A stretch of 63,377 bases of DNA, filler included, from Lenisia limosa (taxonomy: Eukaryota > Protista > Breviatea): NCBI GenBank assembly GCA_001655205.1. It is 10 parts of 10 records of this genome, joined end to end, with 100 filler letters (N's around TTAATTAATTAA, not from the genome) between each part and the next. Parts side by side here need not be neighbours in the genome. Positions count along the whole stretch, not along the records: positions 1 to 29,499 come from LPNZ01006268.1; 9 more parts are not named here. The stretch is one strand, 5' to 3'. The stretch's first letter is position 1, and the number at the start of each line of letters is the position of its first letter. The notes below the pieces were generated by a model. It made no database searches, had not been told where the DNA came from, and worked only from the letters and a program-made list of their open reading frames with translations. The position numbers were made by a program, and so were the translations under genes. Positions 2,770 through 32,085 of this stretch are shown in pieces.

Positions 2770-5259
2770 CTAGTAGTCGCACCCAGTGAGATTTTTGATT
2801 AACTCCACAAAGACATCAATGCCTTCTGTTACTGCGCTTTTGTGGACGAACTCGTCTTCAGCTGAATGGATTAATAATAGCGGCAGAATGTTGAACATTG
2901 AAATCAGATGCAAAAAGTACCACCCACCGTGGAGGCGAACAGCAGTGTTTGGGAGGTAAGTGAAGCCGAAAGCATGGCACCCCATGTGCCTCAGGTATCT
3001 CGCGTCAGTGGATGCAGGGAAAATACGGGGCTCGAATTGAACACCCCTGATTATAATGTTGGGTATGTTCGGGAAGGAACATACCTCGATTCAAGAGCCG
3101 TTGTAATGGCTTTGTAAATGGCGGTTTCTGAATAATGAAAGACTGCAAACTGAAGCATATTGTATATTCCAAGTTTTGCCCACCCTGGGAGGAAGGCCGA
3201 CTGAGAATCGGCTTTTGGATGTATTCGAATTTCACACCACACTACAAAAGTCAGCCATGGTCTTTATATGGTGGTGTGACTACTTTCTTGGCAAGGGATG
3301 CGATTAACTCTTCGAATTCTTCATTTTCAATGGATGGTGTCACGCGGAAGTCCACTGTAACACTCAGTTCAGAGGGGACAACGTTGGGCTGAGAGCCGCT
3401 AAAGGATGAGCACTATGTGGTGGGGACAACGTTGGGCTAAGAGCCGCTAAAGGATGAGCACTTGGTGGGGGGCTTCTTTTCTCGGCGTCTTACCACGATT
3501 GGCTGAGCTTACCCTTGCATCATGTTGATGTTGACAGTTGTGACGTCACCTAACTTGGCGCTTTCTGTCTCAATCTTGCCCTTGTTCTCTGCCCTGCACT
3601 TGTTAGCCTTTGTTAAGTTGCTTGACTAACTTGAAAACACAACAGCACTCACCCTTGCTTCTGCTTCTGCTTCTAATGTCTTCTATCCCAATGCAAGAAA
3701 CTACCCTCCCCCAACACTTCTACCTCTCCCCTTTTCACATACCTCATTTTTTGGATTTCATTGATCAAGTCTTGTACTTTTTCCATTGCTGTATCCTCAA
3801 CAAACATTGAGCCGTGACCGGGGTTTCCAGGAGCAATAAACTACAGAGTTATGGCTTATTTTGGTTGCTCAAAGATGGATGCGATATTAAAATAACATGT
3901 ATCGGGCCCATCAATTCTATTAAAAGGAAGACGGCCTACTTTGATCCAGTAAGGTGAACGCTCTCCATAAAAAAGACCCAATTGCGCCGTAGGGTCAGCC
4001 AATCCCTCTTGAATGTCGTAAGTACAAGTAACATATCCGTCCATCCTATTTGAATTCCTCAAACCGTCAATGAAAGTGCCAATATTCAGTTCCTTGAACT
4101 CGGGTGCCTTCATGAAAGTCTCCCACCCATTATGGCCGCCAATTTCTTCATCAGGGGCGAATGCGATCACAATGTTTCTAAAGCAATCAGAGAATAGAAC
4201 TAGGTGAAAGGAACTTGTTTATATTTATACCCCTAGAATAGAATACATCTTTCTGTTTTTACCGGCGTTGGGTATGAAAAAGAACTGTGAATATTTTTTT
4301 TTACAAAATTGTTTTCTATTTCAGCACAAAACTATTGAGCAACCACAGCTACACTTATGTATGCCCATTATACCTCTTTGGAGTCCATCCCTCACGGAGA
4401 AGACGGGCCACTGCTTCCACATGGTGAATGGCACAAATCTAGAATTACTAATTAGAACGGAGAAAAGAATAATAAGAGGGTGATAGGAATTTGGGGAAGT
4501 GGGTAACTCTGAGTTATTCCAACCTTCATATCTTGAGTACCTCTTCCGAAGATATTGCCTATAGTGTGAATAATTATCGTCAAACAACAAACCTTCTTCA
4601 TCCATGTGCGCTGAAAATGGATCATAAGTCCATGTTTGTCCCGTCACAGGCACCTACGTCATAAAAGAAAAGCAAACCGCAAAGGGTGATAAAAAGAAAA
4701 TGACTTGGTTTCAACCAACCCACAAACCACATCCATGTGAGAGTTCAAGCAGAGGGCGGGAAGGTTTGGATCACACCCCTCAATTTTCACAATGCCCATT
4801 GAAGCCCCATTCGCAGTCTATGTGAGTAAGAAAAAGAATTATTATTAAATATGAACTAGTTGAACAAAAGTGGTCAACATGTTGAGTTCATATATTACAT
4901 ATGATATCTATTTCTCGTGCCTTACTTTATACGTCAAAAGAGTGAGGTTGTGTGCTTCAACATAATCTTCAAGGAAGCTCAACACAACATCATAGTTGGT
5001 TTTGGGCTGCATAGACTCCTAAAGCATATGACTGTGAAAATTTTTTATGCCTGCCCCATGGAGCCAAAAGGGGAATCGATTCGGCTTAACAATTATCCCC
5101 TGTAAAGAGATTCTGACAAGCGTCCCGACCCACTTTGATTCGAACGTAGTGTCTGAAGGCGGCAACGGCAAATCCAGGGTCACTTGGTGCTCCGAAGTTG
5201 ATCTTGTTCCCAAGCATCGTACGAAGCCCGCGCTTTAATCCTGAGATAACTGCACTCAT
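2770..5259 (-). CDS. ACY1: Aminoacylase-1 (M20A metallopeptidase family), multi-exon
   Basis: Exons read FRHYVRIK-SMQPKTNY, GCDPNLPALCLNSHMDV, WTYDPFSAHMDEEG, APDEEIGG..EGLADP..FYGERSPYW, LGDVTTVNINMMQGGSQPNVVP..DFRVTP and GFTYLPNTAVRLH..DEFV, all collinear with ACY1 motifs. Stop TAG at 2770-2772; ATG inferred at 5259. Confidence 0.92.
3374..3462. repeat. Two 41-bp direct repeats (period 48) covering a 3' splice site of ACY1
   Basis: ggggacaacgttgggct(g/a)agagccgctaaaggatgagcact at 3374-3414 and 3422-3462, one mismatch. Confidence 0.95.
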
Positions 5260-5836: not shown

Positions 5837-8800
5837 ATGAAGCTCTGGGTACTTCTTTCCCTTTTAGCCTTTTCGGTCTCGGTATTTGGAGGTGGTGGTT
5901 ATGACTGGCGGGTGAAGAGTCCGCATGCCCATTCAGGTAAGTCCTTCCTAAGTCCTCGGTTGATCCCATTCTTCTTGCTTTTTTGGAGTTACTTTCTCAC
6001 TCCCATACAGTTCGTAGTACTTTGATAAATAAACTCTTGGAATTCTATTTACAAATCCCTTATAGAGGTGATATTAATTATTGGTAGTGTGTCCAAAAAT
6101 CATGACCATTTTGTGTAGATGTGCATATCATATGATATAGCATATATATCGCCCGATATAGACTGGTACATTATACTATATACATGACATTCACATTTCA
6201 GACAATAGTCGTGTGAATTCGCATCTTGAACCAGAAGGCCTTTTTATACGGGATACAAAAAGCAAAGAAGCCCTCGTTCAAATCCTTATTGGAGGGAAAA
6301 GGTACGACTGAAGCTGTCTAACGTTTAGTATTGTTAAATACCAAAAGCTTCCTTCCGGTCATATGGGGAAGATACATGATGCTGAAACACGTGAGGTTGT
6401 ATCTCCATGTCCAGGAGACACCCACACCTTTGCCATGGAACAGCTCCTTGGAGGTTTGTACTCTTTCTTCTAATGATGCCTAGTTTTCTCTCGTCCCGAA
6501 CACCGCTACGTTATTACTTCGATACCGGACTGCTTGAAATCGTAAGGGCCCTTGGTGCTAACGTTTCAGTGCCGACAGTTTCTTCACCCTTGTCGTAACA
6601 ATGGATTTCAACGGAAATGTTGAAATTTTAAGACAAGGTCGTTCATTACGATTCATTGTGGTTGACAAGGACGGAAAGACGAGAAGCGTCTTGTACAACA
6701 ATCTTAAAGTCTATGATGCTGAAAGTTTGACACACAAATGAAGGTGATTACCGTTCAGAAACCATTCTCAAGAGTGAAATGGCAGTTGATGGCAAAAGCC
6801 TTCTTTTCAAAGTTCTCGAAGAGGGAAAACTTCCTGTTGGCCTTTACTCATTGGAACCTTCTAACTCTGTAGATCACAATAGACCCGGTTATTACCGACT
6901 CACCACACATTATCGGAAGAAAAAGCGGTACGATGAACACTCCGTTCTAATTGGAAACCAGGGTACAACGCGGAGTTTGGTGTATCAATGACAACAATCA
7001 AGCGCATTGGCCAAAATGACGTGAGTACTTAGTTTGTTATTATGTGTGACCCTTGTAGATTTTGGCAGTAGCTGCTCTCAATGATGGGGAGCAAGGTTTG
7101 ACTCATTGTTTAAAGACTTATTCTTAGATATGAACGAACCATACCATGGAACAGGAAACTTGTATCTTCTGGATAGCGTGTTCAGCACTGGCCACAACCC
7201 TCCAGGACATAACTCAGAAAACATCTGCTCCCTCTCAGATATTGAAGTCCAATATTGTCGGGCTGGATCCAATATCATGGCGGTAGGCATTGTTTTGGTC
7301 AAACTAGTCTAACAAATGTTGCAGTTGGACGATTACGATGGTGATGGAGTTGACGAGCTCTTTGTTTCCAATTCAGGTTTGCTTTGAAAAATTCTTGTCA
7401 TGATGATGCAATAAATAAGAAACATGAAACTAAGAGCCATCTAAACCATCACGTTTTGAACCGGTTCCTCTACGCTAAACAATATAGTCACAAAATCTGC
7501 CGCAATGTTTATGTCTTTGGACAACTTCAACGAGGCAATTCTCTTGGATCTGTCAGATTCTGACAGAAGCAACGCAAATGGATTTGGATGTGGGTTATTG
7601 AGACATTTATTAACAATTTAGCGAGTGCCCTTCAGGTAGACTGCACAGGAAATGGGAAGAAGGACCTTTTGGTATCCTCTCCTGCTCATTGTGGAGCTGT
7701 TTATGGCTTTGTAAGATCTGTGGAAATTGAGCATTTTTCTCATTTTAATAGGAAAATAGAGCCTATTCGAATCTTATTATTGACCAAACAACGAAAGATC
7801 CCAGTAATCATGTTTCAACAAATAGGTAAGAGTTGTCTGTCACATATGTTTCAGTATTGAGTCAGTTGTCCTGAGTGTTACCAAAACAACCAGCCTGAGT
7901 GAATTGGTATGGTGTCTCCTAACTAACATAGTAGATTATGTATATTACATGTGATACACCAAGTCAAAATACCTTCAACTGGATTGTAATGTCCCAAGAA
8001 ACAGAATCTGAAGAGTTAGCTCTTGACCATTTCACAGATGCAGATGGGAAGTGATTGATGTTTTTGAATCTCAAGCAGACTGCTCATCAGAGTTCCAGAT
8101 CTTTCCAAAGCCAATTGTTCGAATGGAAAACTCATGACGTTTTAGACTTTGTATGCTACACAGTTGTACGCTCTTGGAATAATACATGAACATACCTTCC
8201 GGTACACATCGCAAGGTAATTTATGTTAAAGAGAGATTTTTTATGTACGTCTTCACATTTTTAGATTACAAGTCTTTATCCGGCACAACTGAGATTAAAA
8301 AATTTAAACGGTTCAGCTTTGCTGACCTGATAATGTAAATAAACCAGCATTTAAGTTTACCATAAAGTGGTTCAACGGTGACGCTTACTGAACAAGAGGA
8401 GTCGAAAAGTAAAGGAATTCAAGCCAAGTTCACTTTGTGTTGGAATTTGAACAACTCACGCTTTAGCTCCAGAGTATCTTCCCTACTCTACCTACAACAA
8501 TGCGATTCTGTGTAAGCTAGGTCGACTTGTTGACACGTACAGCCTCCACAAGTTGCTACACTCGCCTCCAAGGACACGCATTAGCTGCTCTCATCACAAC
8601 AAATTACTTTCAATCTTTTGCAATCTCAGAGTAGGATACCCTCTGAATTTGACAACAACAGACCATTGCACAGAGATAGACCAAATAGCGCAGAAGAGGT
8701 TAGTGACAGAATAGTGATCAATTTCGATTTTTTGGAACCTAATTGAGCATTTCAATTTTTATCATTTTGAAAAATCATTATTAGTACAAAACTGGAACGG

Positions 8801-11800
8801 GCCAAGTTCACGTCACCAAAAACACTGGGATGAGTAGCTTTTCGAAATACCAAACGCTGAAGCCGCCAGTGTTCAACCAAGGTGAATTCTCAAATGGATA
8901 GAAATTGCTTCACAAGTCTATTAGAACACAGTGACGGTTTAGATGGACGATTCGGTTGGGCTATGACCTCCTTCGATGTCAACGGTGATGGACTCTCAGA
9001 TCTGGTAAGTCCAATGACACTCTGATACACTCTGGATGAACCCTCGTGTTATCTTTGTTCATCATTTCGACTTCATATCATACTTTGTTTTAACTAAGAT
9101 GCTGCAACCATGCTCTCACCCTTCAGTTTGTTGGAGAGCCAGGTACTCTCAAAGGAACAGTTCACTTGTTTCTGGGTACTTTCAATGGTGAAATTGAGAG
9201 TTCACCAGTGTGGAAAGCAGAAGGAGAATACGACTTTGGTGAATTTGGGTTGGCAATCATGTTACTGACTGCTAAGCACTACACTTTCTCATGCGGATAT
9301 GAACAACGATGGCGTTGAAGACATTATCATTTCAGCACCTTGGAATGCTGCCCAGTTGGCTTCTATTTGTCTAACTATACAGGTCTGCTTCAGGAACCGT
9401 CTATGTCTACTACACTCGCAATCGTGTGAGTGGATATGAACCAGCTGCCGAGCGCTACATTAACACCAAGGTTGGAAAACGCTAATGTTTTATGGTTCTA
9501 GCCCGACATTACCATTTCTGGAAGTGAATGCCCTCACAGCGGATTTGGACTGAAGCTGGCAACCGGAGACTACAACAACGATGGTTTGTCTTCTTATTCT
9601 TAAGTACAAGGTCTGTTTGATATCGCAATTTCCTCTATCAAACATCGTTTTGAAAATTGCGATAAAGAAGCTCATTCTGAGGAGTGGAAGCAGGCTGGTG
9701 GAGCTGTCTTTGTGTACAAAGGTTTGAGTACCTTTATGTTCCCATCAAATAGGGGTCAAGCACGCAGACTTGGAACTGTCAATCGTAACGCACCCTGATT
9801 TATCATACGAGAGCAATTCAATGGCCACAATTGTGTACAAGATCACAAATCACGGTCCACATTCAGTTACAGCAGCTAATGTTACTGTATGTTTTGACAA
9901 CAAGCTTCATACTTCAGTTCACAATGACACGACACTTGTCTATTGAAACCGCCGGTCACAACTGCTTCAACACCCTCAATGATGCTGGAGAGTAAGTGTC
10001 ACTGGATCTTATTGTATAGAATGGTGGGGACGTTTCAAACAGGCCCTTTGGCTATTGGGGAGGATTTTGAGCTGACAACGTCAATGATAGTCAGCAGCAA
10101 TCGGGTATTTTGATTTACTTCTTAGATCAGTCCAAATGCAGTAACAGAGCAAAGCGCATCAATTGTTGTCCAATCCGGCGACCCAGATGTTTTACCGGAG
10201 TTTGACATGGAAGACAACCACAGTCACTCCCTCGACTTCCAACTCACATTCGACAGTACTCTTGAACCAGGCTTTGTGACTCAGACGATCACAGCTGGGC
10301 AAAATGCAGAGCTTCAAGTGACTTTCTACAATCAAGGTCCGACAGTTGCAGTCAATGTTCCTTTCAAAATCGTGTATGTGAACACCATGACCGTTGTGAA
10401 AAGACCAATCTACTGTGGACCAAGTATAAAGGTAAACAGTTCAGTTTTTGTGATATCATTTAGAGCCACACTATGTACATTATCACGTGCACTATTCCAA
10501 CAGTTGCTTACAAGACCATTGTGGCTAGTAGTTTCATAGTCAGCGTGTCTCCGAGCAAGAGTGCCGGTAACCTCAGTCTGAGAACATACATTCAGTCCGT
10601 TAATACGGCGACACATGTAGGTTTTTTTGTAACTCACTTGTCTAGATAATATCGCACACTGGTGTCAAATACGCAACCGTCAAAACTACTCGTCAAAGTA
10701 ACATGGAGTTCAATCTTGTTCTTGCTAAAAATCAATTATCTGGAAAGGTATGTGTAAATCACAACGAATTGAGACTTCACAACCCCGTAACTTGATAGCA
10801 ATACCCAGCCACCGTGGAAGTGACCAATCATGGTCCAAGTTCTGCCAAATCCCTGACAACGTCACTTCAACTCGCACACCCGTTGACAGGACCTGCCATC
10901 AGCGTATGCCCACGAATATGTGACACTACAGGGCACAATTGTATCGTGTCCATCCGGTGCAACATGCTCATCAATGTCAAACGGAATTGCAGCATCGTTC
11001 AGTGAAGTTCCTGTGGACAGCACAGTTTTCATTCCATTCACCGCTTTTGCTGATGCGGCACTTGACGAACAGGTACTTAGTGCCCAAGAAATCAACCACA
11101 CAGTTGTTGAAGCATCGCATTTCCAGTTCTTGGGAACTCGGCCAATCCGATGTAACTGATTCTGACAGTGCTATCAAGCACTCATACTATCTTGTAGGCT
11201 TAGTAGCTCGTTATCTTTCAGGTAAGCGAAGCGGTTCCAAATGGGTCCAGTATTGATTCGGAAGGGATTGTGAGTATTTCAACAAGTGAAAAGGTGAGGT
11301 AACAACAATAAGTTTCATTTTTCAGGGAGTATTTTCAATCATTGTTTCCAACAAAGGACCTTCAAATGTCCATGGGTAAGGCTCACAACTCTCATTTATC
11401 AAGACTTCATGCATCAATTCAAATGTTTAAAACCATCGGCGGTGTTGAGAGCGTGCATGAATACAACCCAGTAACTTCTGATTTCGACCTCACAAAATGT
11501 ACTGGTGTTGATGGGACTGGAATGGAGTGCGCAGTGGACAACATCAACGCCAATGAAGTCAGTTCTTTGGCTGAATACTCCGTGATTATAACCACTCTAT
11601 TCTCCACAGGCATTAACAATTGGAACAATTGAGTCTGCTGCATTGACTACCGACGTGAACAGTATCCGATGCACAGTTGTCGTATCACGAATTACCCCGA
11701 GTAGGCTGTTTTTATTATGACGCTTAAGGCTTGGAAGACAGATTATATCCTGGGAGCGTTATTGAAGAATCTTCTGTTATTAAAGTTGGTTGTGGGGAGA

Positions 11801-14800
11801 GATTGAAAGATGTGCAACACGGAAGATATGATTTCATATAATATCTCTGAAAGTTCACATTTCATTAACTAGATTGGGAGAAATCTAGACATTAGCGCAT
11901 TTGTGTCTGGTCCAGCTTCAACAAACGCTGGGGAGTTATTTTTTGCAGTTGTACAGGTGAGTCATGATGGGAAGGGGGTATTGTCAAAGACTACTGTAAA
12001 CCATAAAAAGAATGATGTAGACAACTATAGAACTTTCTCCCTCTAATGTGTGATATGAGTTTTACTGGACAGATTTATGATTCTTCTAAATTGATATGCC
12101 AGGTGTCAAATAATGGTCCTACTGCCACCACAGATCTTATGTACGAAGTCTTTGCTCCCGAATCCATGATGTCTCTTGACTGGCTCGTTTTACCAGAATC
12201 TGCGTGTGTTCAAGAGGGTGAGATATACCAATTTATTCTTACGGTTCAGCCACGAAGTGGAGCTGCTCTAAGGCTTCGCTTTCTTCATTGGAGAGAATCC
12301 AAACTAGCTTCAAAGCCATCATACCAGCTGACCACGAGGGTTACAAAGATGCAGAATTCCGTGTCTCTGGAATTGATTTTAATGTGGGGACTTTTTGATT
12401 CATATTTGAACTTGTTGTAATATTCTTCATCCAAATGGTTTAGAATGACCACATTGACACCGACTTGAGCAACAACGATTTCGCGTTTATGTTCAACATT
12501 TCAAATGAAAACAATCTCTTTGTTTCATCGTCATCCTTCCCGACACCTCCAAATAAAATTGTGACTGGCAAAGTATGGACCTGTTTCTGTAACTCAAATT
12601 TAGACTTGTGAACTATCTGTTTTGGTAATGAACACCGGTCCTTCTCAAATGCCAACTGCTGGGGCTATATCATTCACACTCACAGCAGAGCAGAGCAATG
12701 TAGTTCAATTCATAAACCTTGAAGATTCATGTACTCTTACTGGTTTAAAAGTTCTTTGTCCATTCCCAAAATTGGCCCCAAACGCTCAAAATACTTTAAG
12801 ACTCAACGTTAAGTACAAATTTGAGGCGCTGGCAAAGGAGGTTGTCCCTTGTTTCTCAATAACATTGTAGTACCTTTATGAGTTTTCATTTGGCGATCTG
12901 ACGACTATTTCATCCCACATTGTTGACAACTCCGCTGATATCTCTGTGGCCACTTCAACTTACCCTGGTGGGTTACTTTAAAACCTTTGGATTGCAAGAC
13001 ACAATTTAATATTAAATACATTATAAGATGAACGACAGATTGAATTTGGTACACCCCATAGATCATGAACACAAACAAATTAATGAGCTAATATCAATAG
13101 AAACGACTGTTTTGCCTTCAGGGTTGTTCCAAGGCTACATCAGAGTTTCCAATAAAGGCCCTGCGCAACAAAACAATGTCGTTATTACGTTAGACTCTAC
13201 ACATGGTACGTGAGATAATAAGTCTTCAATGACAATATTTCTGAATCAATAAATTATGAACAAAACGTTACACGTCAGCGATTGAGCATTTGACATATTT
13301 CCTGTCATTGACCTGACTAGGAACGTTGGAAACAGCCCCAACCGGCACTTCATGCATTGGATTGATATGTACAATCCCAACCTTCATTGCTGGGTAAGGC
13401 ATCTCATCTTTTTTTACTTTTAGCCAAACGTTTATTTTCAAAATATCTGGCAACGCGCCGTCAAGCGATTCCGTAACCATTTCAATTGAAGGCACTGTGG
13501 CACACCAAAGCAACGACCCTAATACTGACAACGACAGCAGTTCGATTGTCTTGAAAACAGCGTCAGGTGCAGATTTGAGAGTTGAGGTTTGTGCTTATTG
13601 AAGTTATATACCAACAGACAAGTCTAATGATACACTTCATCTCTGATGAATTAGGTCAAAGCTGTTGTAGCCGGGGAGGCCACTGACACTGTTTTACACG
13701 GAACCGAGTTCTCAGTTTGGTCATTCGGTTTCTACTTACTCCCAGATGGCTGCTTTGAATGTCAATAATGGGCCAACTGAAACGGCTGCCAAAACTGTTC
13801 TCTTTGTTCCTGAGGTTTGTTCAATTGCTGTCTTATCAAATAGGGAATGTTTTTGGTAACGGCAGTGTCTGGATACCAGGCGTCCAATTGCCCTGCGGAT
13901 TCGAATAGTAGGTCACCTTTAGTTACACACACGCAGTGAAAACTGGATATCTTTAATCCAGTAGGTTTAACCGGCCCTAATTGTCAACTTGAATGGAGTC
14001 ACGCATCACTTAGTGTGGGATGTAGGGTAACAAGTGCAGAGGACTTGATGGGAGTTGTACTTCGCTCCATTCTCTCGATAAATATGTATAAATACATCGA
14101 TATTTCTCCGATCTTTTTTGGACCACGGTGTAACCCTAGACTTGATAATGCCAACTCTATAGGCTCAGCAATTGACGTCAGCATCTGCAGTCCTTCGGCT
14201 GCCGACTGTGTTTACGGAACCTTCATTCATTGTAAGTTGCAAGTGCAATCATGATTATGCAGGTCAAATCGCAATCGATAATTGTTGGAGATAGTGACCC
14301 CGACACATCCAACAATGTGGGGACCCGGGTTATCAACGCTGTTGCTGGTAAGTGATGCAGGCTGTTTTCATAGTCCAAGGAGCCGACCTCCTTCTGTCAA
14401 TAAGCTTCCAAGAAACGGTCAACTCAGGCACCTCTCTTCCAGTCAATGTAATCTGCTCAAATTATGGTCCTTCCACGGCCCTCTCACCCGAAGTGACACT
14501 TCACATTCCTGAAGTGATGACTTATGATGTTGAAAGCGCTTCTGTGGCAGTTTTGGTACTCAATGCTACCACTGTAGTCTTCACGTTGCCACAAATGGAG
14601 CCCTTCGACAAGGTGGTCATTTCTTTCAGCCTGGCAGTTGGTAGTGCAATTCCCACCCAAGAGCGTGAAATCACAGCCTCAATATCGGATGCCACTCTCC
14701 CTGACAACATTTTGAAGAACAACGAAGACTCTCGACCAATTATGTTTCTGGCAACAGCTGAAGTTGACATTTTCCTCAAGCTTCTTAGCACTAAGAGTAG

Positions 14801-17800
14801 CCACCTAAAGAGGGGAGAAACTGGTGTCATGGTGTTGACTGTAAAGAACAAGGGTCCAGCATTAGTGCAACATGCGGTGATAGAGTTATTATTCCCTGAC
14901 ACTAGTGTATCGTTAGGTACTGATTTGTCCGTTGTGGCCACGGAAATTCAGCCTGGAAGTGACGCGTCCTTGCAGGCAGTTGTGACAATACCCACTGACT
15001 TCAACGACAACTACATCATTTTCACAGGACGAATGGGTGCAACTGCAGTCAGCCCCAGGGTCACAGACAAGCAAACCGTCATCATCATTACAGAGAGTGA
15101 TATTACTGCAAGTATTAGAGTTGTTGATGATATGATAATGGGCGAATTAGCGCAATTTGTGATTTCTGGCGGTAACAAAGGCCCATCCACAGCGTTACAG
15201 TTGACAATAGTGATGACCATTCCTTCCGACTTGGTGTTTGAGAAGTCTTCTGGTGAGGCTGCCTGCATCCACAAAGATGGCGTGTTGACCTGTGTTGTTG
15301 CTGCACTTGAGCCGAAAAAGTCATTTGGCCAAATAGTGACAGTGGCAGTTTTGGACGCAGAAGAGCTATCGGTGAGATTGGAGATTGACTTATTTTGGAA
15401 CCATCATTATTGTGATCTACTCATAACATACTATACTCTCAACTTGTGAGGATTTTACCTGCTATTAACCCAATAGGGATCATTGTCATGCACGATCACC
15501 GCTAGCTCCCCGCTGAAGAGCCCCTTTACCGTATTCAGCACGGAATACAATGTCGTTAGGTCTGCTGACACTGCCGTCATTCCATTCTTCTCTGCAATGC
15601 TGGACATTGGTCGAAATGTTCCGTTCAGTCTTAGGGTTCTCAACATTGGGCCTTCTTCAGCTAAGAACCTTCAAGTACTAATTGAGTTTTCTAACGACTT
15701 ACAACTGACATCGGTGTTGGTAGAAGGATGCATTGTTCTTTCCAATACTGTGACTTGCCAATTGGCTGAGTTGCTGCCTCGAGAGACGAAACTACTCAGC
15801 GGTTACATGCTTGTTGCTCCAAGTCAACATGCAGTTACTTCTGACATCAGCAGCACTGTATCCAACAACAGGGACAACAACCCCTCCAATAACCAAGTTA
15901 TTTCTGGTGTTCAGTTTATTGAGACTTCTGGTTAGTCAACTTTGGTCTTATTATGTGTTTAGATATTGGAAGCAGTATATCTGTTCAGCCCAAAGTCCCC
16001 ATAATTGGAGGGGCGGCCGTTTTGACTGTTTGTTTTCTTTCGAGCTTACTTCTTTAGACTGCAGTATCAAACCTCGGCCCTCTCTCGTCAGGTGTAGTGA
16101 CAGCTTTAGTCACACTTCCGGACATTGGAAACCCAACAACGATACCTGATGAATGCACGTTGGAGTCTTCGTTACAATACAAGTTGGTTAATTACCTTGT
16201 CACTTTGTAGCTGTGTCATTGATGACATCACTTCAAATGAAAAAGTACAATTGCGGTAAGATAGATGGTTTCAACATAAACTCAAAGCCCAACTGTTTTC
16301 TCATAAGTCTAGCTTTTGGTACACAGTCAACACAGAATTGTCCGAAAACACCGCAATATCAGCTTCCGTCCTTGTGTCAGGATTGAAAAATGACCCAAAT
16401 ACTGACAACAATATGGACCTTGTCTACACCGAGCTGATTAAGGCCTCAACAGTAACAATGTTCACTTCGCTCTACCCCAGGTGAGATCCAAGTTATGATG
16501 ACAATCAAGAGTGTCTGTTCCAGTTGGAGGGTTCTTGAGAGTATCAAGTCATATCACAAACATCGGCCCTTCGTCGTGTTCATCATTTCGAGTGGAGTTT
16601 GATGAAAGCGCCTCTCTCAGGCAGTCGACAACAGAATGTGAAATGATGGAGTCGCAAGACAAGGCCAGCTGTGACTATCTTGGCTGTAACGTCACTTCGA
16701 TTGACCTTGCTCAAAACAAGGATATTTCGGTTAGTTAGTGACCGTAAATTGATTTCACAGATGGTCTGCGTGCTTTCGGTTTTGTCTGAGGCAGAAGCGG
16801 ATAAGATTGCAGCCAGAACAGCAATGGTAATAGCACTTGGTGACTGACATTGTAGTCATCCATTCATTTTGTCGGTCTTAATGGATGCAATGTTGAGTCG
16901 GACATTACAGTGTCGTTTTCAATTGAAGTGAGTTTGCAATGTTACTCACATTTTAGCTGGACAAAACTGCAGACCTTTCAGTTGGAATGTTGGCTTCGCC
17001 TACTATTTCCGGTAATCGAGTTCTGAAGAACAAAGTGACAGTTTACAACAAGGGCCCTGCAACAGCCAAATCCGTGGGTTGCATTGCCATGACTTAGCCT
17101 TTAGCCGTTTATTCTGCTTCATCCCGTCGACCTTCCTTCAAGCATGTCAAGCTGGACTGGAGCAACGGGGTGCCTTGAATTGCCCTCAGGTGACATTAAG
17201 TGCACACTCTCGGACATAGCGGTGAGTTAAGTGCACCTCTCGGACATAGCGGTAAGTTAAGTGCAGACATAGCGGTAAGTTAAGTGCACCTCTCGGACGG
17301 TGAGTTAAACCCTTCTGTCTCAAAACAGATACATAATATATGTATGCAAAATATTTCTACTGTCATGATATGAATAACAAAACATCTAAACCCCTTTCCT
17401 TATTCTGATGGCTGGACAGGCCAACGCCCGGAGTGACATTCAAGTGGGCAGACTCATGGATAAGCAACTTGGTAGTTTACCTTATGACAGAATCAATTCC
17501 ACTGTCACGGCCATGTCTCTAACTGAGGACCCAAGGTAGGCTGAAGGTCCTCTGGAGATCTCTAACCAAATAGTGGCGATCAAAACTTCGGTGTATCGTC
17601 ATCTCGAATCAGGAGGAGTGCGGATGTGCTGGTCAAGATCCGCGTTGTTCCTTTGGAAATTGCCAAGGACGGCAACTTGAAGGTTTGAACTATGACTTAC
17701 AGCTTATATTAAGACGGTGGTGACGACAACAAATAGCGGACCTGCTGACGCCCGCAACGTGGTTACTGTCATTCATCTTCCCTATTACACTGATATGGCC

Positions 17801-19635
17801 CACTTGTCCTTCTCTTACTCTAATGCCAAGTGTATTGTTGTTCAGGGAACGGTAAGCGCTGTCATAAGTCTAAGCAGCTAGACAAACATTGAGTGCACTT
17901 CAGACACCATTGAAATGCTCCAAACATCCAACGTTGTGATCAAGGTTGGGCGTGTCAATTTGGTGCATTTTTTGATTCGGCTACAGCGAACTGAGATCTT
18001 ATGATGAAGGTTAAGGCAACAGAGGAGCCCGGTGTAAACCTTGGTACATTCGACCTTACTGCCGCCACAATGGCCCTTGAAGATGACTTGAACATGGATA
18101 ACAACGCAGCTGAGGCGTCTGCCGTTATTCTGCCGGCAACTTGCGACCCTAGGGTGATCATTAATTTCAGATGCCGTATATAGACTAGTTTTTTAGTTGT
18201 TTGACTTCTCAGGTCCAATTCAGCGCCTGGCCAGTGCAGAATAAGGCAGGTAACCTCATTACATTCCAAGCTAACGTTGTCAACCCAGGCCCTTCCCCCA
18301 CTGGTTAGCATGGTTCTTGTGAGGATGTGTTGTTGAAGTCTGATGTTCAAGGTCCAATCACGACAGTCTTCTCTATCCCGGCAGAGTTCGTTGTATTGCC
18401 TCCTCCAATTGGCTGTGTTGTCTCTGGGATTTCAGGCATGGGTAGTGAAGTGGCATGTTCCCGAATTGATCTTCCACCCAAGTCTCAAGCTGACCCCTGT
18501 CAGCCCAATGAAGAAGGCTGTTGGACTGTTAACATTGAGGTTCTCTCAAATCTGTCACCATCATCACTCGGGACTCACGTTGCGGCTGTTTCAATTACTT
18601 CTGCCCTTGATTCTGACATGACCAACAACAATGGCTCATTGCTGGTGGAGTCTACGACAGATGCAGCCTTGCAGGTCACTGTTCTCCCCACACTTGGGTT
18701 CTACAGTGGTACGAATACTTCAGCGATCAGTGTAATATCTACATTGTAGCATTTGTTATTCATCGTATTTCTATGATTCACAGTTGTTGAAATTGTTGAC
18801 CATGTTACCCCACTTACCTCTTCAGGCAACTCAGACTCAGGCATAATGGTTGCGAGCAGCGACACTGACATTGCGTTTCAGTTTTCGATTCTCAACCCTG
18901 GCACGTCAGCGGCAACCGACTGCGTGCTAAAAGTGGACAGCCTCTTGCCTGAGGTAAGCCACACTCTGCTGCCTCAGGTTCTAGGGTACCTCGTATGGAG
19001 CGTTCAGCGTCAAGGCGGACATGAAGACCGCCTTCGGAAGGGAGGCCATCCATGGTCACGATGCCAAGTGCACAGTGCAAGACCTCACGCTAACCTGTGA
19101 CCTTGGCACTGTCTGGGAACAGAGTGCTGTCGCCTTTGTTCCCTCCACCGTCACGGTCACATTCTACCAAATTCAGCGGAATGACACAGTCGACTTCGAG
19201 AGCACTGTTGGTGTTAGCTCAGGGTGGCCTGAAGCTGCGGCCAACTCAACCACGAAGTTCCGGTTGGTGGCATAGTATGTCACATTGAGTGTGATGAATT
19301 TCTGTTTTGTTTTTGACAAACACAGGGTAATTGGAAAGACTGTGAGTTTGAGGAAACAAGAGATTATTGAAGAGGAAGCGGACAACACTCTCAATAGGAA
19401 TATTTCAATTGGTGGGTGTCTGTAGGTATTGACCGCTCAGCTGGTGGCTTGCTTGGACTGGCGCTGGTGGCCTTCCTTATCAAGCGGGGATTCTTCAAAA
19501 GCAAGAATCACCCTGATAACTACGATGAAGGCGAGGGTAAGCAAGCGTAACTATTCTGACCGTCAGGACTTGGGGAATTGGGCTCTCCCACCGAGCCTGA
19601 TGACGACCTTGGCTCCCCCACTCCTAACCTCACTG
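5837..19635 (+). CDS. Giant integrin-alpha-like type I membrane protein (signal peptide, N-terminal domain, FG-GAP beta-propeller, ~18 DUF11/Ig-like stalk repeats, TM, GFFK tail); last exon unresolved
   Basis: Signal peptide MKLWVLLSLLAFSVSVFG. FG-GAP/Ca-loop segments DDYDGDGVDELFV (~7328), DCTGNGKKDLLVSSP (~7639), RFGWAMTSFDVNGDGLSDL (8948-9005), FG..DMNNDGVEDIIISAP (~9295), FGLKLATGDYNNDG (~9544). Seventeen NxGP motifs plus one NPGT variant between 9847 and 18900. TM AGGLLGLALVAFLI followed by KRGFFKS at 19482-19502. Dozens of short GT-AG introns. Confidence 0.88.
17196..17308 (+). repeat. Four degenerate ~23-31-bp tandem copies of an exon-end plus 5' splice site inside the integrin gene
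   Basis: ttaagtgcac(a)ctctcggacatagcg-gt(g/a)ag repeated four times with internal deletions. Confidence 0.92.
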
Positions 19636-19786
19636 GTGAGACTTTCTTTTAGAGCCTTTCCGCTAGGTTACGATTCATGCTTACCGTTTTGTACTATTAT
19701 ATTTAATGTATTTGTTATCTTGTTCCCAGCCAATTGTACAAATACACCTGAATCCACCAACCTAAGAATAAAAATACAGAGTGGGT

Positions 19787-22700
19787 TTAGAGTCTCTTCC
19801 TCGCCAGTTCAGCGGTGTACTTGTCAGGAACACCATCCTGTAGTAACTCCTTGATCTTATCTTGGCGGAATCGCTAAATAGTAAGAAACATTAAAAGAAG
19901 ACAGAACGATATTATATCATATAATATTTTATTCTGGGATAGACTCACGAGCATTTCATTGTCGAAGCCCCCCCAAACCTCCACCTTCTCAGCGTGGATT
20001 TTCTGGTCGCGATCGAAGGATGTTGGTTGCTTTGCTAATGCACGCTCTTGACGAAGTTGTTGTTCACGTTCGTGGATTTGGTTCTTAAGGGGTAAGTAGA
20101 AAACAGGAAGGGACCAAGAAAACGTTAAAGCTTGAAAACCCTCCAACCTCTAATATTTGTTTATGGGACCTATTTCTATCAACAGTCATAGCCTGTGTTC
20201 TCTTTTCGGCTTCAATCTGCTTCTCCTAAAAAGTGAGCTCCTGAAAAGGCAACAGCACCGCCTTGTTCATACAGGGTATTGTAAAGGAAGTAAAGAATTG
20301 ACAAAGGCTCGTATTTCCATTTTGAAGGAAGCCCCCTGGCAAACCTGTGCGGCAACAACACGGTCGAACTCGTCACGCTCCATACGGGCTTGGGCTGCAA
20401 GACGAAGTTCTGCGGAGGTAAATCGCAGAACAAAGCGTGTAGTTTCCTTGGCCCAAAACAGTCCAGGAGCATTTGTTTTTATGGGCTCATGATGTTAAAA
20501 ATCCAAAAATTGCTCCCTCTTGGTATTGTCATAGCATAGGAACTATTAGGAAGAGAGCCAGCCATACCTTTGTCTCTCTTTTGGGCAGCGTTCGCCTCCA
20601 TCAAGTCAGCCTAGATGGTCGTGAATATTGGATGGTGTGGTCAAAAATTCAATTCCAGTACAATAACTATATTTTTTGAGGATTTAATGTAACATTTGAA
20701 CTTGTCGAGAGCTTAATATACAGCCAATATTGGGTAGCAACAGTTCTGACAAAAAAGGTCTGCAAAGCAACCAAACAATACCTGCCTTTTGACCTGTTTC
20801 TCAGCTTCAGCCTTCTCCTTGGCTCTGAAGTCCCGTTCTCTCTGGTCGGCCGCGCGGCGAGCTCTCAACGCGTCCCGGTCTGCCTCATGGTCACTTGTAG
20901 ACTTCTTCATCGTCATCACCTATGGTATGAAATGCGAACCAGTATAATTATAAAAAACTGGACTGAATCTTCCACAAAACGAAGTTCTCAATGAAAAGAT
21001 GAAACCTATTGTGTTGGCCACATTTTCCAAAAAATATCGTGAGCTGCATAACCAAAGGCAAGGACGAAAATTCTATGAGTGCTTTGTACCTGTTGAACAT
21101 CGTTCGCCTTTCTCTTCTTGATCATTGCTTGTTCCTCTTCATAAGCTTGTTGCCGGGATTCGCGTTCTTGGAGGTAGCGAGCAACACGACTATTCAGTAA
21201 TAAACAAAACGAGAGCATCCCAAAAAAAAGCAGAAAATAGTCATTTGAGCCACGTACAGGTCTTCCTCCTTCTCCTGCTGCTTGCGGTTCGATTTGATTT
21301 GAATTAACCGGTCGTTTTCACCCATAACTTCGTCCATCAGCGACCTAGCTGGGTGAAGAAAACATTGGGACGAGGGCAACAAACTATGAAAGAAAAATAA
21401 ATAACAGAAGAAATAAATATGGATAGAATACTTTGATATCACATGATATAGAGACAAGAACATCAAGGAACTTCCGACACGAGCTTTTACAGCGCCATAA
21501 TGATTTCTGCAATCACAGTACCTTTGCTTAGTTTTGCGCAGAGCAGCCTTTCTCTCCTCTTCATCCTTCAACAGCTGAACGGATCAGTAAATGTGCTCTG
21601 GAGACACCACCAACCTGGACGTCTCTGAGCATGGCTGCTTGCTCCTGCTCGCGCATTTCGCGTTCAACCTCACGTGCTTGGTCTGGAGTAGTGAGGACAT
21701 TGTTGGGTGAAACAATTAAGTCCATCGATCAAAAAGCATATAGCCACCCACCTCTTTCCTTGATCTGCGTCCTGATAGCGGCAGCTCCTGCCTTGAGAGT
21801 CAAGACATGCTCCTCATCCTTCTTGCGCTGGCTGGAAAGGTCAGAAATACTCAAACAGAAGGGACGTTACATTTCTGTTTCTCTCTTCTGTTTGGACAAC
21901 ATCATATCATGGGTTCGCGACTCATCCTCCTTCAGACGACGCTGGATTTCTTTCTGAAAGAAATGTGAGGGGAAGTGAAAGGGGAACCAGTGTTGAAAAA
22001 AAACTTTGATTTGTTAATTATCCTGTAAAATATCAAGAGTTACATCAACCAACCTTCTCCTTGATTTGCTTTTCGCGGATTGCGGCGCATTTGGCGTAAC
22101 TTGCCATGCTGGCTACTCTCTTGGCTTCGTCTACAGCATTAGCTTGCAAGCCTTGACAGGTACCGTTGAATATATTACAACGGGGCTGAATATCTCCATG
22201 AATTCATTAATAATAATCCTGCTATTGTACTTGTCCTGTTCACGTTACATTCCGTCCTGGGCAAAAGCCCCTCACCGGTTTCAAGAAGAAGTAGACCGTC
22301 CGCCTTCTGTTGGATGGATTTGTTACTGTGTTCGCGCTCAATTTCCTCTGAACTGTCAATTGCCGATCTAACCAGAGAGTACCAGATCCCTTCCAATCAC
22401 CCCCCCCCCCCCCCCCNNNNNNNNNNNNNNNNNNNNNNNNNNNNNNNNNNNNNNNNNNNNNNNNNNNNNNNNNNNNNNNNNNNNNNNNTTTCGGATGGCT
22501 ACGATGGTAAGTCCGGCAAATGTTAGGGTGAATTTAAGCTATCAGGATATTCACGATAACCCATGGATGTTTAAGTAAGCTTGTCCATGGAGAATGATTG
22601 GGGTTTCTTTCAGCACGAGAAGCAAACACCAACAACTGAAATTTCATTCTGTCCGGACTTGGATTCCCTTCAACAGCGTTTTATTGTGTGGTTGCAGACC

Positions 22701-23520
22701 CCCTCCCCTGCAAGAATACTCCCGAGATTTGAGGGTGGTTGGTAGGAAAGGAATGCATAACCCCCACCGGCAGTAGACTGCAGCTGGTCCTTTCGGGATG
22801 TTTCCGACATTTTCATGCGGGCTTCTCTTGAGTTGCTTGCCGGCATGCTCATGTCCTGAAGATGAGAACAACAGCCGCCGGACCAACCTTGATCTTAGCA
22901 AATTCGTTCCTTGACAGCACCACAGCATCTTTGCCTGCCTTGGCCTGAGCTTTCTGCAGGGTTGAACGAGACACGGCCGGCGCTTTGCCTGCCGAGTAAA
23001 AAAAAACCTTGCATAATTCTGAAATAAATGGGTTTCAAACGCATTTTCTTCTTTCGTTTAAGTATATCAAGGGAAGAAAGTATTAAGTTGCACTATAACG
23101 AATTTGGGCGATAGGGCTGGGGAGGACGCCTACGGGATGTTCCTGGCTTGACTGTTCCTGAAAAAAGGCTTTCATCAACTTCTGAGGAACGGCCTCTGCG
23201 GGAGAGTGAGTCAGGCCCGCAAACAAACAATTGTCTCAAAACCCAAGCCTCCATTCGCGTGTAGAACCTACTTGTAGTTTGATCTTTGTGAACGAACACT
23301 TCTTTCACTGTTTATGGAGCCTGCAACTGAGGATGCCTAGAGAGTGTGAACATAAAACCATATAGTGCAGTAACTACACATAATAAATAGTTAATATTGC
23401 TCAATTCAATAAACTAATTCAGACAAAGGCGCGTATCTCCGTTTATACAAGAGTTCCACTGAAACTGAGAAGCGTGAAATCCAATGCTTCGTCCAATATG
23501 ATATTAGCCATCAATACCAT
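19787..23520 (-). CDS. CFAP45: Cilia- and flagella-associated protein 45 (CCDC19), multi-exon
   Basis: N-terminal RSSEVDESLFSG, VVLSRNEFAKIK, DHEADRDALRARRAADQRERDFRAKEK, MERDEFDRVVAAQ and C-terminal KIKELLQDGVPDKYTAELARKRL* match CFAP45 motifs. Stop TAA 19787-19789; ATG inferred at 23520 followed directly by an intron. Confidence 0.88.
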
Positions 23521-24015
23521 GGTGAAAGCTGAAGCGTGGTTCAAAGCAAACGATTCACAAAATTAAAGGTGGGCTTAAAGTACTCTGTTGAATGTAGACT
23601 GTGCTAATTCACCGTATATTATTATATAGCTACAATATAAAGAGTTCTTTTCTTTGTAAACCTTTTGAAAATCAATTGAAAATTTTTGGGGGTTTTGAGC
23701 AGAGTACTAAAGCTATCTTAATATTTATATAAGTATACTAATATAATGAATAAGTTATTTAATTACGTAGAATAAAGCTGAAAAATTAAATAAAATTCAG
23801 TCTATATAAGTATATAATATTTATAACTCGCCAGCATTTTTTTTCGCCCTTTTTTGCCTTCATATTTCATCGCTAACCTTATATACCTTTGCTTTTTTAA
23901 AGAGAGTTTTTTGACTCTGTATGTAGGTTAGGTAGATTTACTTAAAGATTGACATTGCACTTGTTCACTTCTACTTCTCTTTCCCAAGCACTGTATATCG
24001 TGGTAACGATTCAAA

Positions 24016-25560
24016 ATGCAATATGATGAACATATCTGGAGAATCATCAACCATGGGCACTGTTCTTTTCGTGTAAAGTGAGACCACTTTCTTTTGTGTG
24101 GTCTTCTGACGCCATTTAGGACTGTAACACAAAACTTTTGCAAGAATGAGTACAATGCAACCGGTCTCTGTGGACGTAGAGCTTGTCCTCTCGCCAACTC
24201 TCGCTATGCAACAATCAAAGAACAGAATGGTATGTTGGTCCTTTGTTTGCTTTCTGCATTTAAGCGTAAATCAGTAAGTAGTATATCCCCCATTCACTGG
24301 ATAGGAAAGCTGTTTCTGCTGACCAAAGTTATTGAGAGGTCACATACCCCTTCAAAGCTGTGGGCTTACAAGAAGCTTTCTCCAAAATATGCTGATGCCC
24401 TCCAGCAAGTAAGGGTTTCATATTTAGGTGTGAACTCATTGTATAGATTACAGACGCTCTTGAGTTTTGGCCTCGATGGATGATTCGTAAGGTCAAACAG
24501 CGGCATACAAAGCTGACTGAGTATCTCATTAGACGCAAGAGGCTTCGCAAGAAGTACAAGTCGGTTTAGTTTTTATGTGAAGAGGAAAAAAATAACGTAC
24601 ATAGGCCTGAGATTGTCACAGAGTCTCGCAAAGTTGCAAAGAGACTTGCGCGCAGGGAAGAGAAGGCTCTTATCGCTGCCAATATTGAGAAGCAGATTGA
24701 AAAGGAAGTTGTTGATCGCTTGAAACAGGTCTGTTGGTCTCTGACTTTTTCAAATCCATAATCACCGTTGTAACAAACAAGGGAACCTATGGTGATATTT
24801 ACAATTTCCCGAAGCAAGCCTTCGACAGTGTCATTGAAGAACAAGAGATCGAGGTTGGTGTTATGTTCGGAATAAGACCGCTGATGAACTAGGAGGAGCA
24901 CCCTGATGAGCTTTATGATCCCGAGGCGGCTGCTGGTAAGTAGGGTTTCTAATGGGGACAGAGGAAAATGCTTTTTGTAAATAAAGCATCAATCCCAGTT
25001 TTTCTAGTGAATCCAACCAATCTGATAATCTTACGATGTAGCTGCTAGACCAGAGGGATTCGGTTCTGATGACGAGGAGTCTGGAAGTGATGTTGGCTCG
25101 GAGGAGGATTCCGACGAGGGTATTTCGGCTGAAGACTCTGATGAAGAAGGAGCTGAGGTAAGCACACGTTCCCAGTAAAAAGACTGTCCATTTTATTTAG
25201 AGAGGATACTTTGTTGATCATATTATATATTCAAAACCTCGGAGGTTGTTCTGACTTTTATAGGGTGACGAGTTCCAGTTCCCATCAGATTTGGATGATC
25301 TTGAGGATGACTCGGATTCTGAAGGCGAAATGGACGAACCGGAGCAACCACCTAAGAAGCTAAAGAAGAAGGGAAAGAAGAAGAAGAGTATGAGGGTATT
25401 TCTCCCCCCCCCCCTTTTTTTTTTTGCCTTNNNNNNNNNNAGAAGGCAGGTGAGTGTCTCCAGTCCTGGACCAAGGCCATGTTCATCTGCTCAAAGATGT
25501 CCCATGTGTCTGCAGCCCAACTCCGGTATGAGAACCGCGAGTCGTCTAAGGACAAGGTTG
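24016..25560 (+). CDS. MAK16: MAK16 ribosome biogenesis protein, multi-exon; 3' end approximate (crosses a small gap)
   Basis: [114 protein letters not shown], then an acidic/basic tail. Confidence 0.95.
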
Positions 25561-25784
25561 GTGGGGCTATATTTACCAATATTCAATCAAATATTTTATA
25601 TGCAGAGAGGGGGAGGGGGGTACAGAAAGCTTTGAGCATAGAGTTGAAAGCCTGTCCCACATTCTACTTATTATCCTTTTAAGTGTGACAAAAAAAAACT
25701 TATGTCTTTGAATTTATACAGACTTTTTTTTGGCAAGCGGCTCGTTTTATAACCTGGTGATAATTCCTGGTGATAATTCCAGGT

Positions 25785-26592
25785 CTGTTACGTGTTTGGA
25801 AGACAGAAGAAGAACTCTCCAAGGCTGAGAGCGTCCAGAAGATGAATGACCCCGAAAGCCCTTGCCACATTGTAATAGGATCTCCGGCGCTGTCAATGGT
25901 TTGTTGTTTGTGTTTTCAACATGTAAATTTCACTTTTTATAATACAACTTTAAATAGTAATTCTCATAATTGTACTGATTCGAACTGTAGTTGAAATGGA
26001 TTTGGCGCTTTTTATTACCATAGGGACTCGACTTTGATGTCGACTACGTCTTTGTGGAGCTGACCAAATCAGACCCGGTCCACAAGGCCATCTAGGTTGG
26101 CATTAATCCTAAATATTTCCCTCCAAAGCTTGTATTTATGGTTATTACGTTTGTATTACTATGAATCTAAATGGAGTGATACCCTCGAAATATGCTTCAT
26201 ATTTGATTGTCAGTCCTGACGTATTAGAGTTTCGGCAGAGGTGGACGGCGAGGAGACGACTTCCACGTTGACGCCGTGATGATGTACGGCAAGGACGACA
26301 CCAATTTTACCCTCGTCGGCGGCGCTGCTAACACGGTCGAGAAGGCCTTCAAACAGGGCGTAAGTAGGGTTCAAACAGATCTCCCGCCCCTCGCACCATG
26401 CGGAAAGTGTTCCGAGTGTCTCGGCACGAGGCCCAGTTTTGACAAGAAGCCTAACAAGTCCGTCACCATGGCTGCAGGCACGTTGAAGAAGTTCCGTCCT
26501 AGCCGCTGCTTCGTACGCTGGTACAAGGAGTACCTCAGCCTGGTTCGTTCTTCCTCTGCCTCTTTGCTGACATTTCCCGACGCTTATGGTTA
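25785..26592 (+). pseudogene. RecQ-type SF2 helicase C-terminal fragment with in-frame TAG in motif VI
   Basis: Spliced exons give ESPCHIVIGSPALSM-GLDFDVDYVF..KAI*-SFGRGGRRGD and a CGKCSEC zinc knuckle. TAG at 26093-26095 sits at the Q of QxxGRxGR. No N-terminal DEAD/H lobe is visible between MAK16 and this fragment. Confidence 0.5.
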
Positions 26593-28261: not shown

Positions 28262-28670
28262 ATCACACCGTCCATATATCTGTGAATTTTCCTCTATCTG
28301 TGAAAACAATCCAAATGAACCTTTTCCTTGATAGAATAAGTTGAGAATTACAGTATTAATCATATAATGTTAATTCATATCATTTTTGAGGATCATCTTC
28401 AGACTTATTTCAATTAAAAACAACCACCAGAACATGTACGACAGAAGACAAAGGTTTAACCCATTTTTATGACGATATAATTGATTTTACATTTAANNNN
28501 NNNNNNNNNNNNNNNNNNNNNNNNNNNNNNNNNNNNNNNNNNNNNNNNNNNNNNNNNNNNNNNTTACGCCAATTTTCTTAGTTATATGCCATATTTTTAG
28601 CAAAATTTTTCGATTAGTTCAAATAAATTCACAGATTGAGGAAAATTCACGGATATATGGACGGTGGGAT
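28262..28670. mobile_element. Non-autonomous TIR element (~400 bp including a gap)
   Basis: 28267-28304 and 28628-28665 are inverted repeats matching at 36/38 nt, extendable to ~43 nt; TAATAT flanks both sides. Confidence 0.65.
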
Positions 28671-28833
28671 TAATATTAATTTTCCCACAGGTTTGTCCAT
28701 TTCATGGCCCACAATACATAGCTATATAGCTCTGGAATGCAGTCAGTATGAGTATTCAATCCAATTTTTATTCCGTAGTTATCTTGACGCATTGACTTGG
28801 TATTTCTTATAAACTTACTGCACGGACTAGTGA

Positions 28834-28953
28834 ACTACGGCACATCGACTTGGGATTCTTGTGAAAACGTTGAATTCCCATGTTTTATATGGGAATTCCT
28901 TGAAATTTTAAAAGCAAATAATGCATTGGAATCCCAAGTTGATTCGCCGCAGT
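28834..28953. mobile_element. Small MITE-like element with ~24-bp TIRs (second partial copy at ~36078-36163)
   Basis: ctacggcacatcgacttgggattc (28835-28858) vs reverse complement of gaatcccaagttgattcgccgcag (28929-28952): 20/24 identical. The right end recurs at 36139-36163. Confidence 0.5.
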
Positions 28954-29599: not shown

Positions 29600-29648
29600 G
29601 TGTTGCCGCCTCCATAAACTGCTCAAAACTGTAGGGGTTATATGGCAT

Positions 29649-32040: not shown

Positions 32041-32085
32041 ATGTACGTGTTGTATACATACAGCCACGCCTATTAAAGTTGTAAG

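Follow-up and report, generated by a model that had tools for sequence, protein, structure and literature searches.

In the breviate protist Lenisia limosa (GCA_001655205.1), a 63,377-nucleotide stretch of DNA assembled from ten parts of ten records (the window) carries, at about 5837-19550 on the plus strand, what is probably a single gene of many exons, whose product would be a type I membrane receptor in the integrin alpha family. The receptor would comprise an FG-GAP beta-propeller head, a leg of 18 DUF11/CLIPPER modules that replaces the thigh, calf-1 and calf-2 domains, and a transmembrane helix followed by the tail motif KRGFFKSK, and it would stand as a long rod that pairs with an integrin beta subunit. 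The gene lies on contig C6268 (LPNZ01006268.1, window positions 1-29,499) of a 49-Mb assembly of 11,727 contigs. Base composition of this contig is about 42% G+C, and long open reading frames are almost absent, a eukaryotic, intron-rich pattern; where introns can be recognised directly in the DNA, they are short and of the GT-AG type, such as the 105-nt intron at 15372-15476 (GTGAGA...AATAG). All parts of the gene named below are on the plus strand.

A sequence-only reading of the window had described an integrin leg expanded to about 18 modules of DUF11 type, each marked by an N-x-G-P motif. Translation of the three plus-strand frames recovers all 18 of the N-x-G-P/T sites, none more than 3 bases from the position first given for it (exact positions are listed with the modules below). 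The accompanying V/I-x-V strand is seen before most of the sites, as hydrophobic-x-hydrophobic-x-N-x-G-P. Within 9840-19280 the pattern N.GP occurs 18 times in the three plus frames, against a mean of 0.85 and a maximum of 6 in 300 dinucleotide-preserving shuffles; it occurs 3 times on the minus strand of the same interval and 0 times on the plus strand of the other 19.9 kb. The module ends that had been quoted are likewise all located. Anchored on the starts of strand A and on the end motifs, the interval 9761-19266 splits into 18 back-to-back modules. DNA-level repetition at the module period is absent, the sole repeat being a 30-nt tandem of 3.6 copies at 17196-17298, so the array is old, as had been proposed from the divergence of its copies.

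The modules are assigned to DUF11 through two kinds of profile. Pfam DUF11 (PF01345, since renamed CLIPPER) matches exon 14352-15446 with 52.4 bits (expectation value, E, 7.6e-14) and 15477-15932 with 36.6 bits (E 6.2e-9), both over the cut-off; scored module by module, 36.6 and 28.7 bits lie over the cut-off and 22.9 below it. A single-repeat profile built from prokaryotic DUF11 segments alone, with the query excluded, was searched against 1,223 open pieces from both strands (the bacteria-only profile). It gives 16 matches at E <0.05, all on the plus strand, in order and within 9761-19254, with N- and C-terminal halves alternating, and nothing elsewhere among those pieces at that threshold. 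These matches cover 15 of the 18 modules and reach 12 modules beyond the Pfam DUF11 matches.

The nearest relatives of the modules point the same way. An exhaustive phmmer search finds 526 proteins at E <=0.001, all of them multi-repeat proteins of 1-5.5 thousand residues, in which as many as 23 stretches match, at 23-31% identity; the sole named protein among them is from a Bacillota metagenome-assembled genome, and the nearest ESM Atlas clusters are all bacterial or archaeal DUF11. The consensus of 43 three-repeat library segments reproduces the modules' own pattern (ADL / N-x-G-P-S-x-A / C...C / D-P-x-x-x-N-N), and the Cys...Cys hairpin is kept in many modules. None of the 150 best library matches has a GFFK tail. 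The CARDB profile (PF07705) reaches 17-19 bits, under its cut-off of 22.7. Kinship with thigh and calf motifs, which the sequence-only reading had taken as established, is weakly visible in sub-threshold Integrin_A_Ig_3 matches over the N-x-G-P strand (E 0.019-0.14) and in the rank of integrin legs in the fold search described below; it falls short of the profile's cut-off.

Many, though not all, DUF11 members carry the Lys-Asp-Asn isopeptide triad that the CLIPPER paper defines (PMC12617251). At profile positions 9, 43 and 101, where the triad would sit, the aligned modules never hold the K/D/N set, showing hydrophobic or other residues instead. Isopeptide-stabilised modules were rejected on this ground: without the triad, the modules cannot form the cross-link of true CLIPPER domains. 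Judged by sequence, they are DUF11/CLIPPER repeats of the cross-link-free kind.

Structure prediction suggests that the modules share one fold. AlphaFold, given the 365-residue intron-free exon that holds modules 9-11 and a 44-row alignment, returns three beta-sandwiches with a mean predicted local distance difference test score (pLDDT) of 87.1. When this model is compared with the PDB by Foldseek, the best 32 matches are all integrin alpha ectodomains, at E 3e-13 upward and over about 460 alignment columns. VIA-align superposes the model on calf-1 plus calf-2 of alpha-M (Z 14.9, root-mean-square deviation 7.0 A, 234 residues) and of alpha-IIb (Z 13.2, 6.5 A, 234 residues). About equally good are its superpositions of single domains on CARDB 3IDU (Z 13.7, 2.5 A, 108 residues), on CLIPPER 9IFR (Z 13.2, 2.7 A, 117 of 123 residues) and on TRAP-beta (Z 12.7, 2.2 A, 107 residues). 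The modelled modules belong to the E-set sandwich group, which includes the integrin leg domains. On the choice between calf and DUF11 the fold alone is neutral, and sequence decides for DUF11.

The array is flanked by integrin parts on both sides, which bears out its description as an integrin leg: immediately upstream are FG-GAP exons that carry Ca2+ loops, and immediately downstream is an exon with a transmembrane helix and KRGFFKSK. A candidate start codon and signal peptide occupy 5837-5890 (ATG, hydrophobic MKLWVLLSLLAFSVSVFG) and would be linked to the exons that follow. The beta-propeller head is read from translation as many short exons across 6560-9720, with Pfam FG-GAP scores at or near the cut-off of 22.1 bits. 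The Ca2+-loop blade DVNGDGLSD (8945-9007) scores 19.2 bits, and its weak PDB matches are nearly all integrin alpha Ca2+ blades (best E 0.019). The blade DMNNDGVED (9278-9346) scores 22.1 bits, and all 45 of its weak PDB matches are integrin alpha chains (E from 0.019). Translation places the final blade before the leg, DYNNDG, at 9502-9600, with 52% identity to the paralog described below. The loops themselves sit at about 8950, 9290 and 9560. Taken singly these matches are weak; they are mutually consistent, and by sequence the head is of FG-GAP type with integrin-type Ca2+ loops.

At the other end, a predicted phase-0 intron (19267-19397, GTGGCA...AATAG), read from the DNA, would join module 18 in frame to the last exon. 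This exon (19398-19550) encodes WWVSVG...GGLLGLALVAFLI as a transmembrane helix; after it come KRGFFKSK, a brief acidic tail and a stop codon. Its sequence ends in ...GGLLGLALVAFLIKRGFFKSK, and the final Arg of the KxGFFKR motif is replaced by Ser. A phmmer search of the PDB with the tail exon finds the alpha-IIb transmembrane and tail segment 2knc_A as its best match (E 0.0021), and all seven matches are integrin alpha.

A second locus repeats the architecture. On contig C8929, the minus strand of 16600-28000 holds a paralog with FG-GAP exons (26251-27983), about 17 DUF11 modules (25818 down to 17061) and a transmembrane helix with KKGFFKEK (16628-16768), in that order. Propeller exons are 43-57% identical between the paralogs and the tail exons 47%; leg modules are collinear and mostly diverged past 35% identity. 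Since the paralog has a collinear long array, the long array is older than the duplication.

The same genome encodes integrin beta chains with unusually long stalks. On the plus strand of contig C6972 (3456-10300), an integrin beta gene scores 41.3, 29.2 and 44.7 bits with PF00362 and includes a PSI-like piece; its beta-I domain (the matches of 29.2 and 44.7 bits) carries the metal-ion-dependent adhesion site motif DVSGSM. Its stalk consists of about 3.9 kb of Cys-rich exons resembling epidermal growth factor (EGF) repeats, with 33 CxC motifs, which implies roughly 15 repeats or more where 4 is canonical. Towards the C-terminus, GWK closes the transmembrane helix, and the tail beyond it has the motifs NSLY and NPLY but not HDRKE. 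Contig C7618 holds a second integrin-beta-like gene with a stalk longer still and an NPLY tail. Both genes exceed the 3-4 EGF/CxC repeats of animals and lack HDRKE, in keeping with the expanded stalks and missing HDRKE reported for breviate integrin beta (Kang et al., preprint 10.1101/2020.04.29.069435). That preprint covers the beta stalk; here the expansion extends to the alpha leg as well. The suggestion that a long alpha might imply an equally long beta thus gains circumstantial support from two beta genes whose EGF stalks are several times the canonical length, while the pairing of alpha with beta stays at the level of inference. A complex prediction that joined the alpha transmembrane and tail exon to the beta transmembrane exon scores 0.02; it used these exons alone, the heads being spliced, and is evidence neither way.

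Two side observations concern the beta contigs. On C7618 (2700-14900 minus, 21200-32300 plus) the long-stalk beta gene is in head-to-head arrangement with a further FG-GAP propeller gene, which has no DUF11 matches and in which C-type lectin- and EGF-like pieces follow the propeller instead. Runs of N (masked sequence) occur at 22415-22490 of the window and at several sites in C6972, C7618 and C8929, often immediately following C-rich sequence readable as Pro codons, and they break up some beta-gene exons.

Several points weigh against reading the locus as a long-legged integrin alpha. The modelled fold fits integrin calf, CARDB, CLIPPER and TRAP-beta without distinguishing among them, and a six-frame genome search with the thigh and calf-2 profiles Integrin_A_Ig_1 (PF08441) and Integrin_A_Ig_3 (PF20806) gives no match over cut-off. 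Modules 4, 5 and 8 have motifs and a non-independent iterated profile as their sole support. The FG-GAP scores of 19.2-22.1 bits are at or under the cut-off, and the signal peptide is a candidate read from translation alone. Alpha-beta pairing is putative, and the score of 0.02 for the transmembrane exons is no verdict on it. A genome-wide search with the Talin_middle profile returns no match; blank genome-wide profile searches, those for thigh and calf-2 included, are weak because the assembly is incomplete and its genes are broken into short exons. The study's sole RNA run, a poly-A metatranscriptome, contains none of the locus, so splicing, exon use and the mature number of modules are all predictions. 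Two dynamic-programming gene models and a spliced profile parser yield unstable exon sets. These models served only to locate parts of modules and the NPGP exon at 18213-18303; the spliced model was otherwise analysed exon by exon, and for many modules the exon boundaries are approximate.

Among the alternatives, the one that best survives this evidence holds that the protein is a stand-alone fibrillar adhesin, monomeric and without a beta partner, that keeps an integrin-like head and tail, the long-stalk betas serving other alphas. Bacterial and archaeal adhesins do have stalk domains of this type in the same tandem layout, GFFKR has lost its clasp Arg, the beta tail lacks HDRKE, and the complex score for the transmembrane exons, uninformative as it is, gave pairing no support. 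Yet the pattern WWV...GG..L..L...GFFK, which packs against beta in integrins, is a conserved feature of both paralogs and of alpha-IIb, and at least two integrin-beta genes with co-expanded stalks reside in the same genome. A lone adhesin is accordingly an unlikely account of the gene.

A further possibility is that the mature protein contains far fewer modules, the exons being alternative cassettes or the gene being in decay, so that an 18-module rod would be a genomic potential and no more. The silence of the RNA run would fit such a case, as would the splitting of most modules into small exons, the poor profile match of some of them, and the 30-nt tandem at 17196-17298, which triplicates a donor-like GGTAAGT and might supply alternative donors. 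Against this, open frames and the motifs that define the fold persist in all 18 modules, although these diverged long ago and have no DNA-level similarity left, three modules stand in one unbroken 1,020-nt exon, module 18 joins the tail exon in frame, and the paralog has kept its modules in comparable number and matching order. A much shortened leg is therefore judged quite improbable.

Fusion of a bacterial DUF11 gene to eukaryotic sequence by misassembly or contamination, suggested by the prokaryotic relatives of the modules and by a sample that looks like a mixed culture or metagenome, is highly improbable, since the module region is rich in GT-AG introns with no long bacterial-style open reading frame, long contigs of the DNA run cover 13601-19600 at an even depth of about 36-39x (the junction 17974-17984 being bridged by short contigs alone), and a second locus has the same architecture. 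A scan of metagenome contigs found no relative.

The modules of the long-legged alpha run as follows, with E values from the bacteria-only profile. Module 1 (9761-10221) has NHGP at 9848, ends in EFDMEDNH (10180-10221) and matches at E 8.6e-5, with a sub-cut-off Pfam CARDB match at E 0.0017. Module 2 (10231-10690, end approximate; NQGP 10330) matches at E 3.7e-4 and module 3 (10700-11181; NHGP 10826) at E 1.2e-5. Module 4 (11207-11669; NKGP 11353) has a weak independent match, E 0.23, and 60.8 bits in an iterated spliced parse that is non-independent. For module 5 (11882-12479; NNGP 12109; end DTDLSNND, 12450-12479) the independent match is also weak; exon 11889-11956 encodes its strands A and B and is followed by the donor GTGAGT at 11957. 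An extra, motif-less module at 11888-12001 was rejected, as it is this strand A/B exon read through into the intron. Module 6 (12477-12933; NTGP 12631) matches at E 1.1e-6, and module 7 (12931-13538; NKGP 13151; end DPNTDNDS, 13512-13538) at E 0.027 in its N half and 0.0011 in its C half. Module 8 (13566-14316; NNGP 13764; end DSDPDTSNN) is recognised by motifs, its profile match being non-significant.

Module 9 (14379-14726; NYGP 14460) gives the strongest match, E 7.1e-16, exceeds the Pfam DUF11 cut-off and is modelled by AlphaFold as a beta-sandwich with pLDDT >90. Modules 10 (14757-15077; NKGP 14847; E 0.0013) and 11 (15093-15563; NKGP 15174; E 6.9e-14) are folded in the same model, and the 105-nt intron noted above lies inside module 11. 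The unbroken exon of 1,020 nt, 14352-15371, holds modules 9 and 10 and most of 11; nearly all other modules carry one to three short introns, and intron loss in this exon is possible. Module 12 (15561-15896; NIGP 15642; end DNNPSNNQ, 15870-15896) combines 36.6 bits with Pfam DUF11 and a profile E of 1.6e-13. Module 13 (15897-16415; NLGP 16070; end NDPNTDNNM) matches in its C half at E 0.0086, and module 14 (16413-16960, end approximate; NIGP 16559) at E 0.02. Module 15 (16966-17536; NKGP 17047; E 3.8e-6) has a collinear counterpart in the paralog, 36% identical to it. It contains the 30-nt tandem, three copies of which include a donor-like GGTAAGT or GGTGAGT; the tandem could be a source of alternative splice donors. 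Module 16 (17555-18105; NSGP 17732; end DDLNMDNN) matches at E 6.6e-6. Module 17 (18136-18632; end DSDMTNNN, 18606-18632) carries NPGP at 18282 in exon 18213-18303 and matches at E 0.0078. Module 18 (18657-19266), the final one before the membrane, has NPGT at 18894 and matches in its C half at E 5.1e-4.

Other parts of the window and genome hold further genes. On the plus strand at 1095-1655 lies a 187-residue open frame of largely Lys/Glu low complexity (EEKKKK repeats), and the marked GC and AT skew in that kilobase is due to it. A homolog of aminoacylase-1 (M20 peptidase) has exons at 3859-4653 on the minus strand (phmmer E 7.9e-12 against human ACY1, 1q7l), and exons of the MAK16 / Ribosomal_L28e family occupy 24082-24480 on the plus strand (Pfam PF01778, E 8e-19). 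Exon-split matches to the N-terminal domain of pyruvate:ferredoxin oxidoreductase are found on four contigs, C8764 (13200-14013), C4093, C7129 and C10400; these sequences suggest an anaerobic or microaerophilic protist and, with the expanded beta stalks and missing HDRKE, give a lead towards a breviate-like anaerobic obazoan. Genome-wide searches with the 7tm_1 (rhodopsin-type G-protein-coupled receptor) and Wnt profiles give no match and share the weakness of the talin search, so that this absence of animal markers speaks only faintly against an animal source.

Compared with known systems, the gene most resembles integrin alpha (ITGA) of animals and other Obazoa. Both have an FG-GAP propeller in which the last blades carry Ca2+ loops, and in both the leg is a series of Ig-like sandwiches; the one transmembrane helix with its WWV...GG motif, the GFFK tail and the presence of integrin beta in the same genome are likewise shared. 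It differs in having 18 leg domains where ITGA has 3, in the match of these domains to Pfam DUF11 and not to Integrin_A_Ig_1/2/3, and in GFFKS for GFFKR. Alpha chains are typically 700-800 residues long in animals; non-animal alphas, amoebozoan homologs among them, are given as 523-1200 residues with 'Ig-fold-like' legs, DUF11 goes unmentioned, and the GFFK tail is essentially obazoan (preprint 10.1101/2020.04.29.069435). Among the papers that could be searched, full text included, none was found to describe an integrin containing DUF11 or a matching expansion on the alpha side.

The DUF11/CLIPPER stalks (PF01345; 9IFR; PMC12617251) share with the leg its sequence family, motifs, CnaA-like Ig fold and long tandem arrays, whereas the gene described here is eukaryotic, split by introns, devoid of the Lys-Asp-Asn triad and fused to an integrin head and tail. 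CARDB (PF07705; 3IDU) and TRAP-beta (PF05753) share the E-set fold (Z 12.7-13.7) and give weak profile matches, but their Pfam scores are all below cut-off and they are single domains in unrelated contexts.

The predicted dimensions suggest how such a receptor might work. With modules of about 110-120 residues, the leg would span about 2,000 residues and the whole protein about 2,500-2,800. An Ig-like domain is about 4 nm long; 18 modules of this size would form a rod of about 60-80 nm, roughly six times a normal integrin leg. The rod may serve as a stalk that holds the ligand-binding head far from the membrane, much as in a bacterial adhesin. Pairing would take place through the head and the membrane-proximal GFFK region, with an integrin beta of this genome whose EGF stalk is expanded several-fold. 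The integrin leg is usually viewed as a fixed three-domain lever, the bending and unbending of which transmits activation; the compact bent-to-extended switchblade of animal integrins would be unlikely here. In integrins the Arg of GFFKR makes the salt bridge of the inner clasp. The cytoplasmic clasp would differ from that of animals, with GFFKS (GFFKE in the paralog) for GFFKR and a beta tail without HDRKE.

The long leg might also be read as the ancestral state, integrin alpha having arisen from a prokaryote-type adhesin with an FG-GAP head and a DUF11 stalk, and thigh and calf being reduced, diverged DUF11 modules. This origin is rather unlikely on present evidence. If it were true, the gene would be a living intermediate between bacterial fibrillar adhesins and integrins, and, with a co-elongated beta, integrin signalling would once have run without a bent-to-extended switch. 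The 18-module alpha and the expanded beta stalks suggest that leg length can vary about six-fold while the head and the membrane-proximal clasp persist. The finding is relevant to the origin of the integrin machinery among prokaryotes, and it offers both a protist receptor pair in which long-stalk integrin signalling may be studied and, in a eukaryote, a DUF11 array free of isopeptide bonds.

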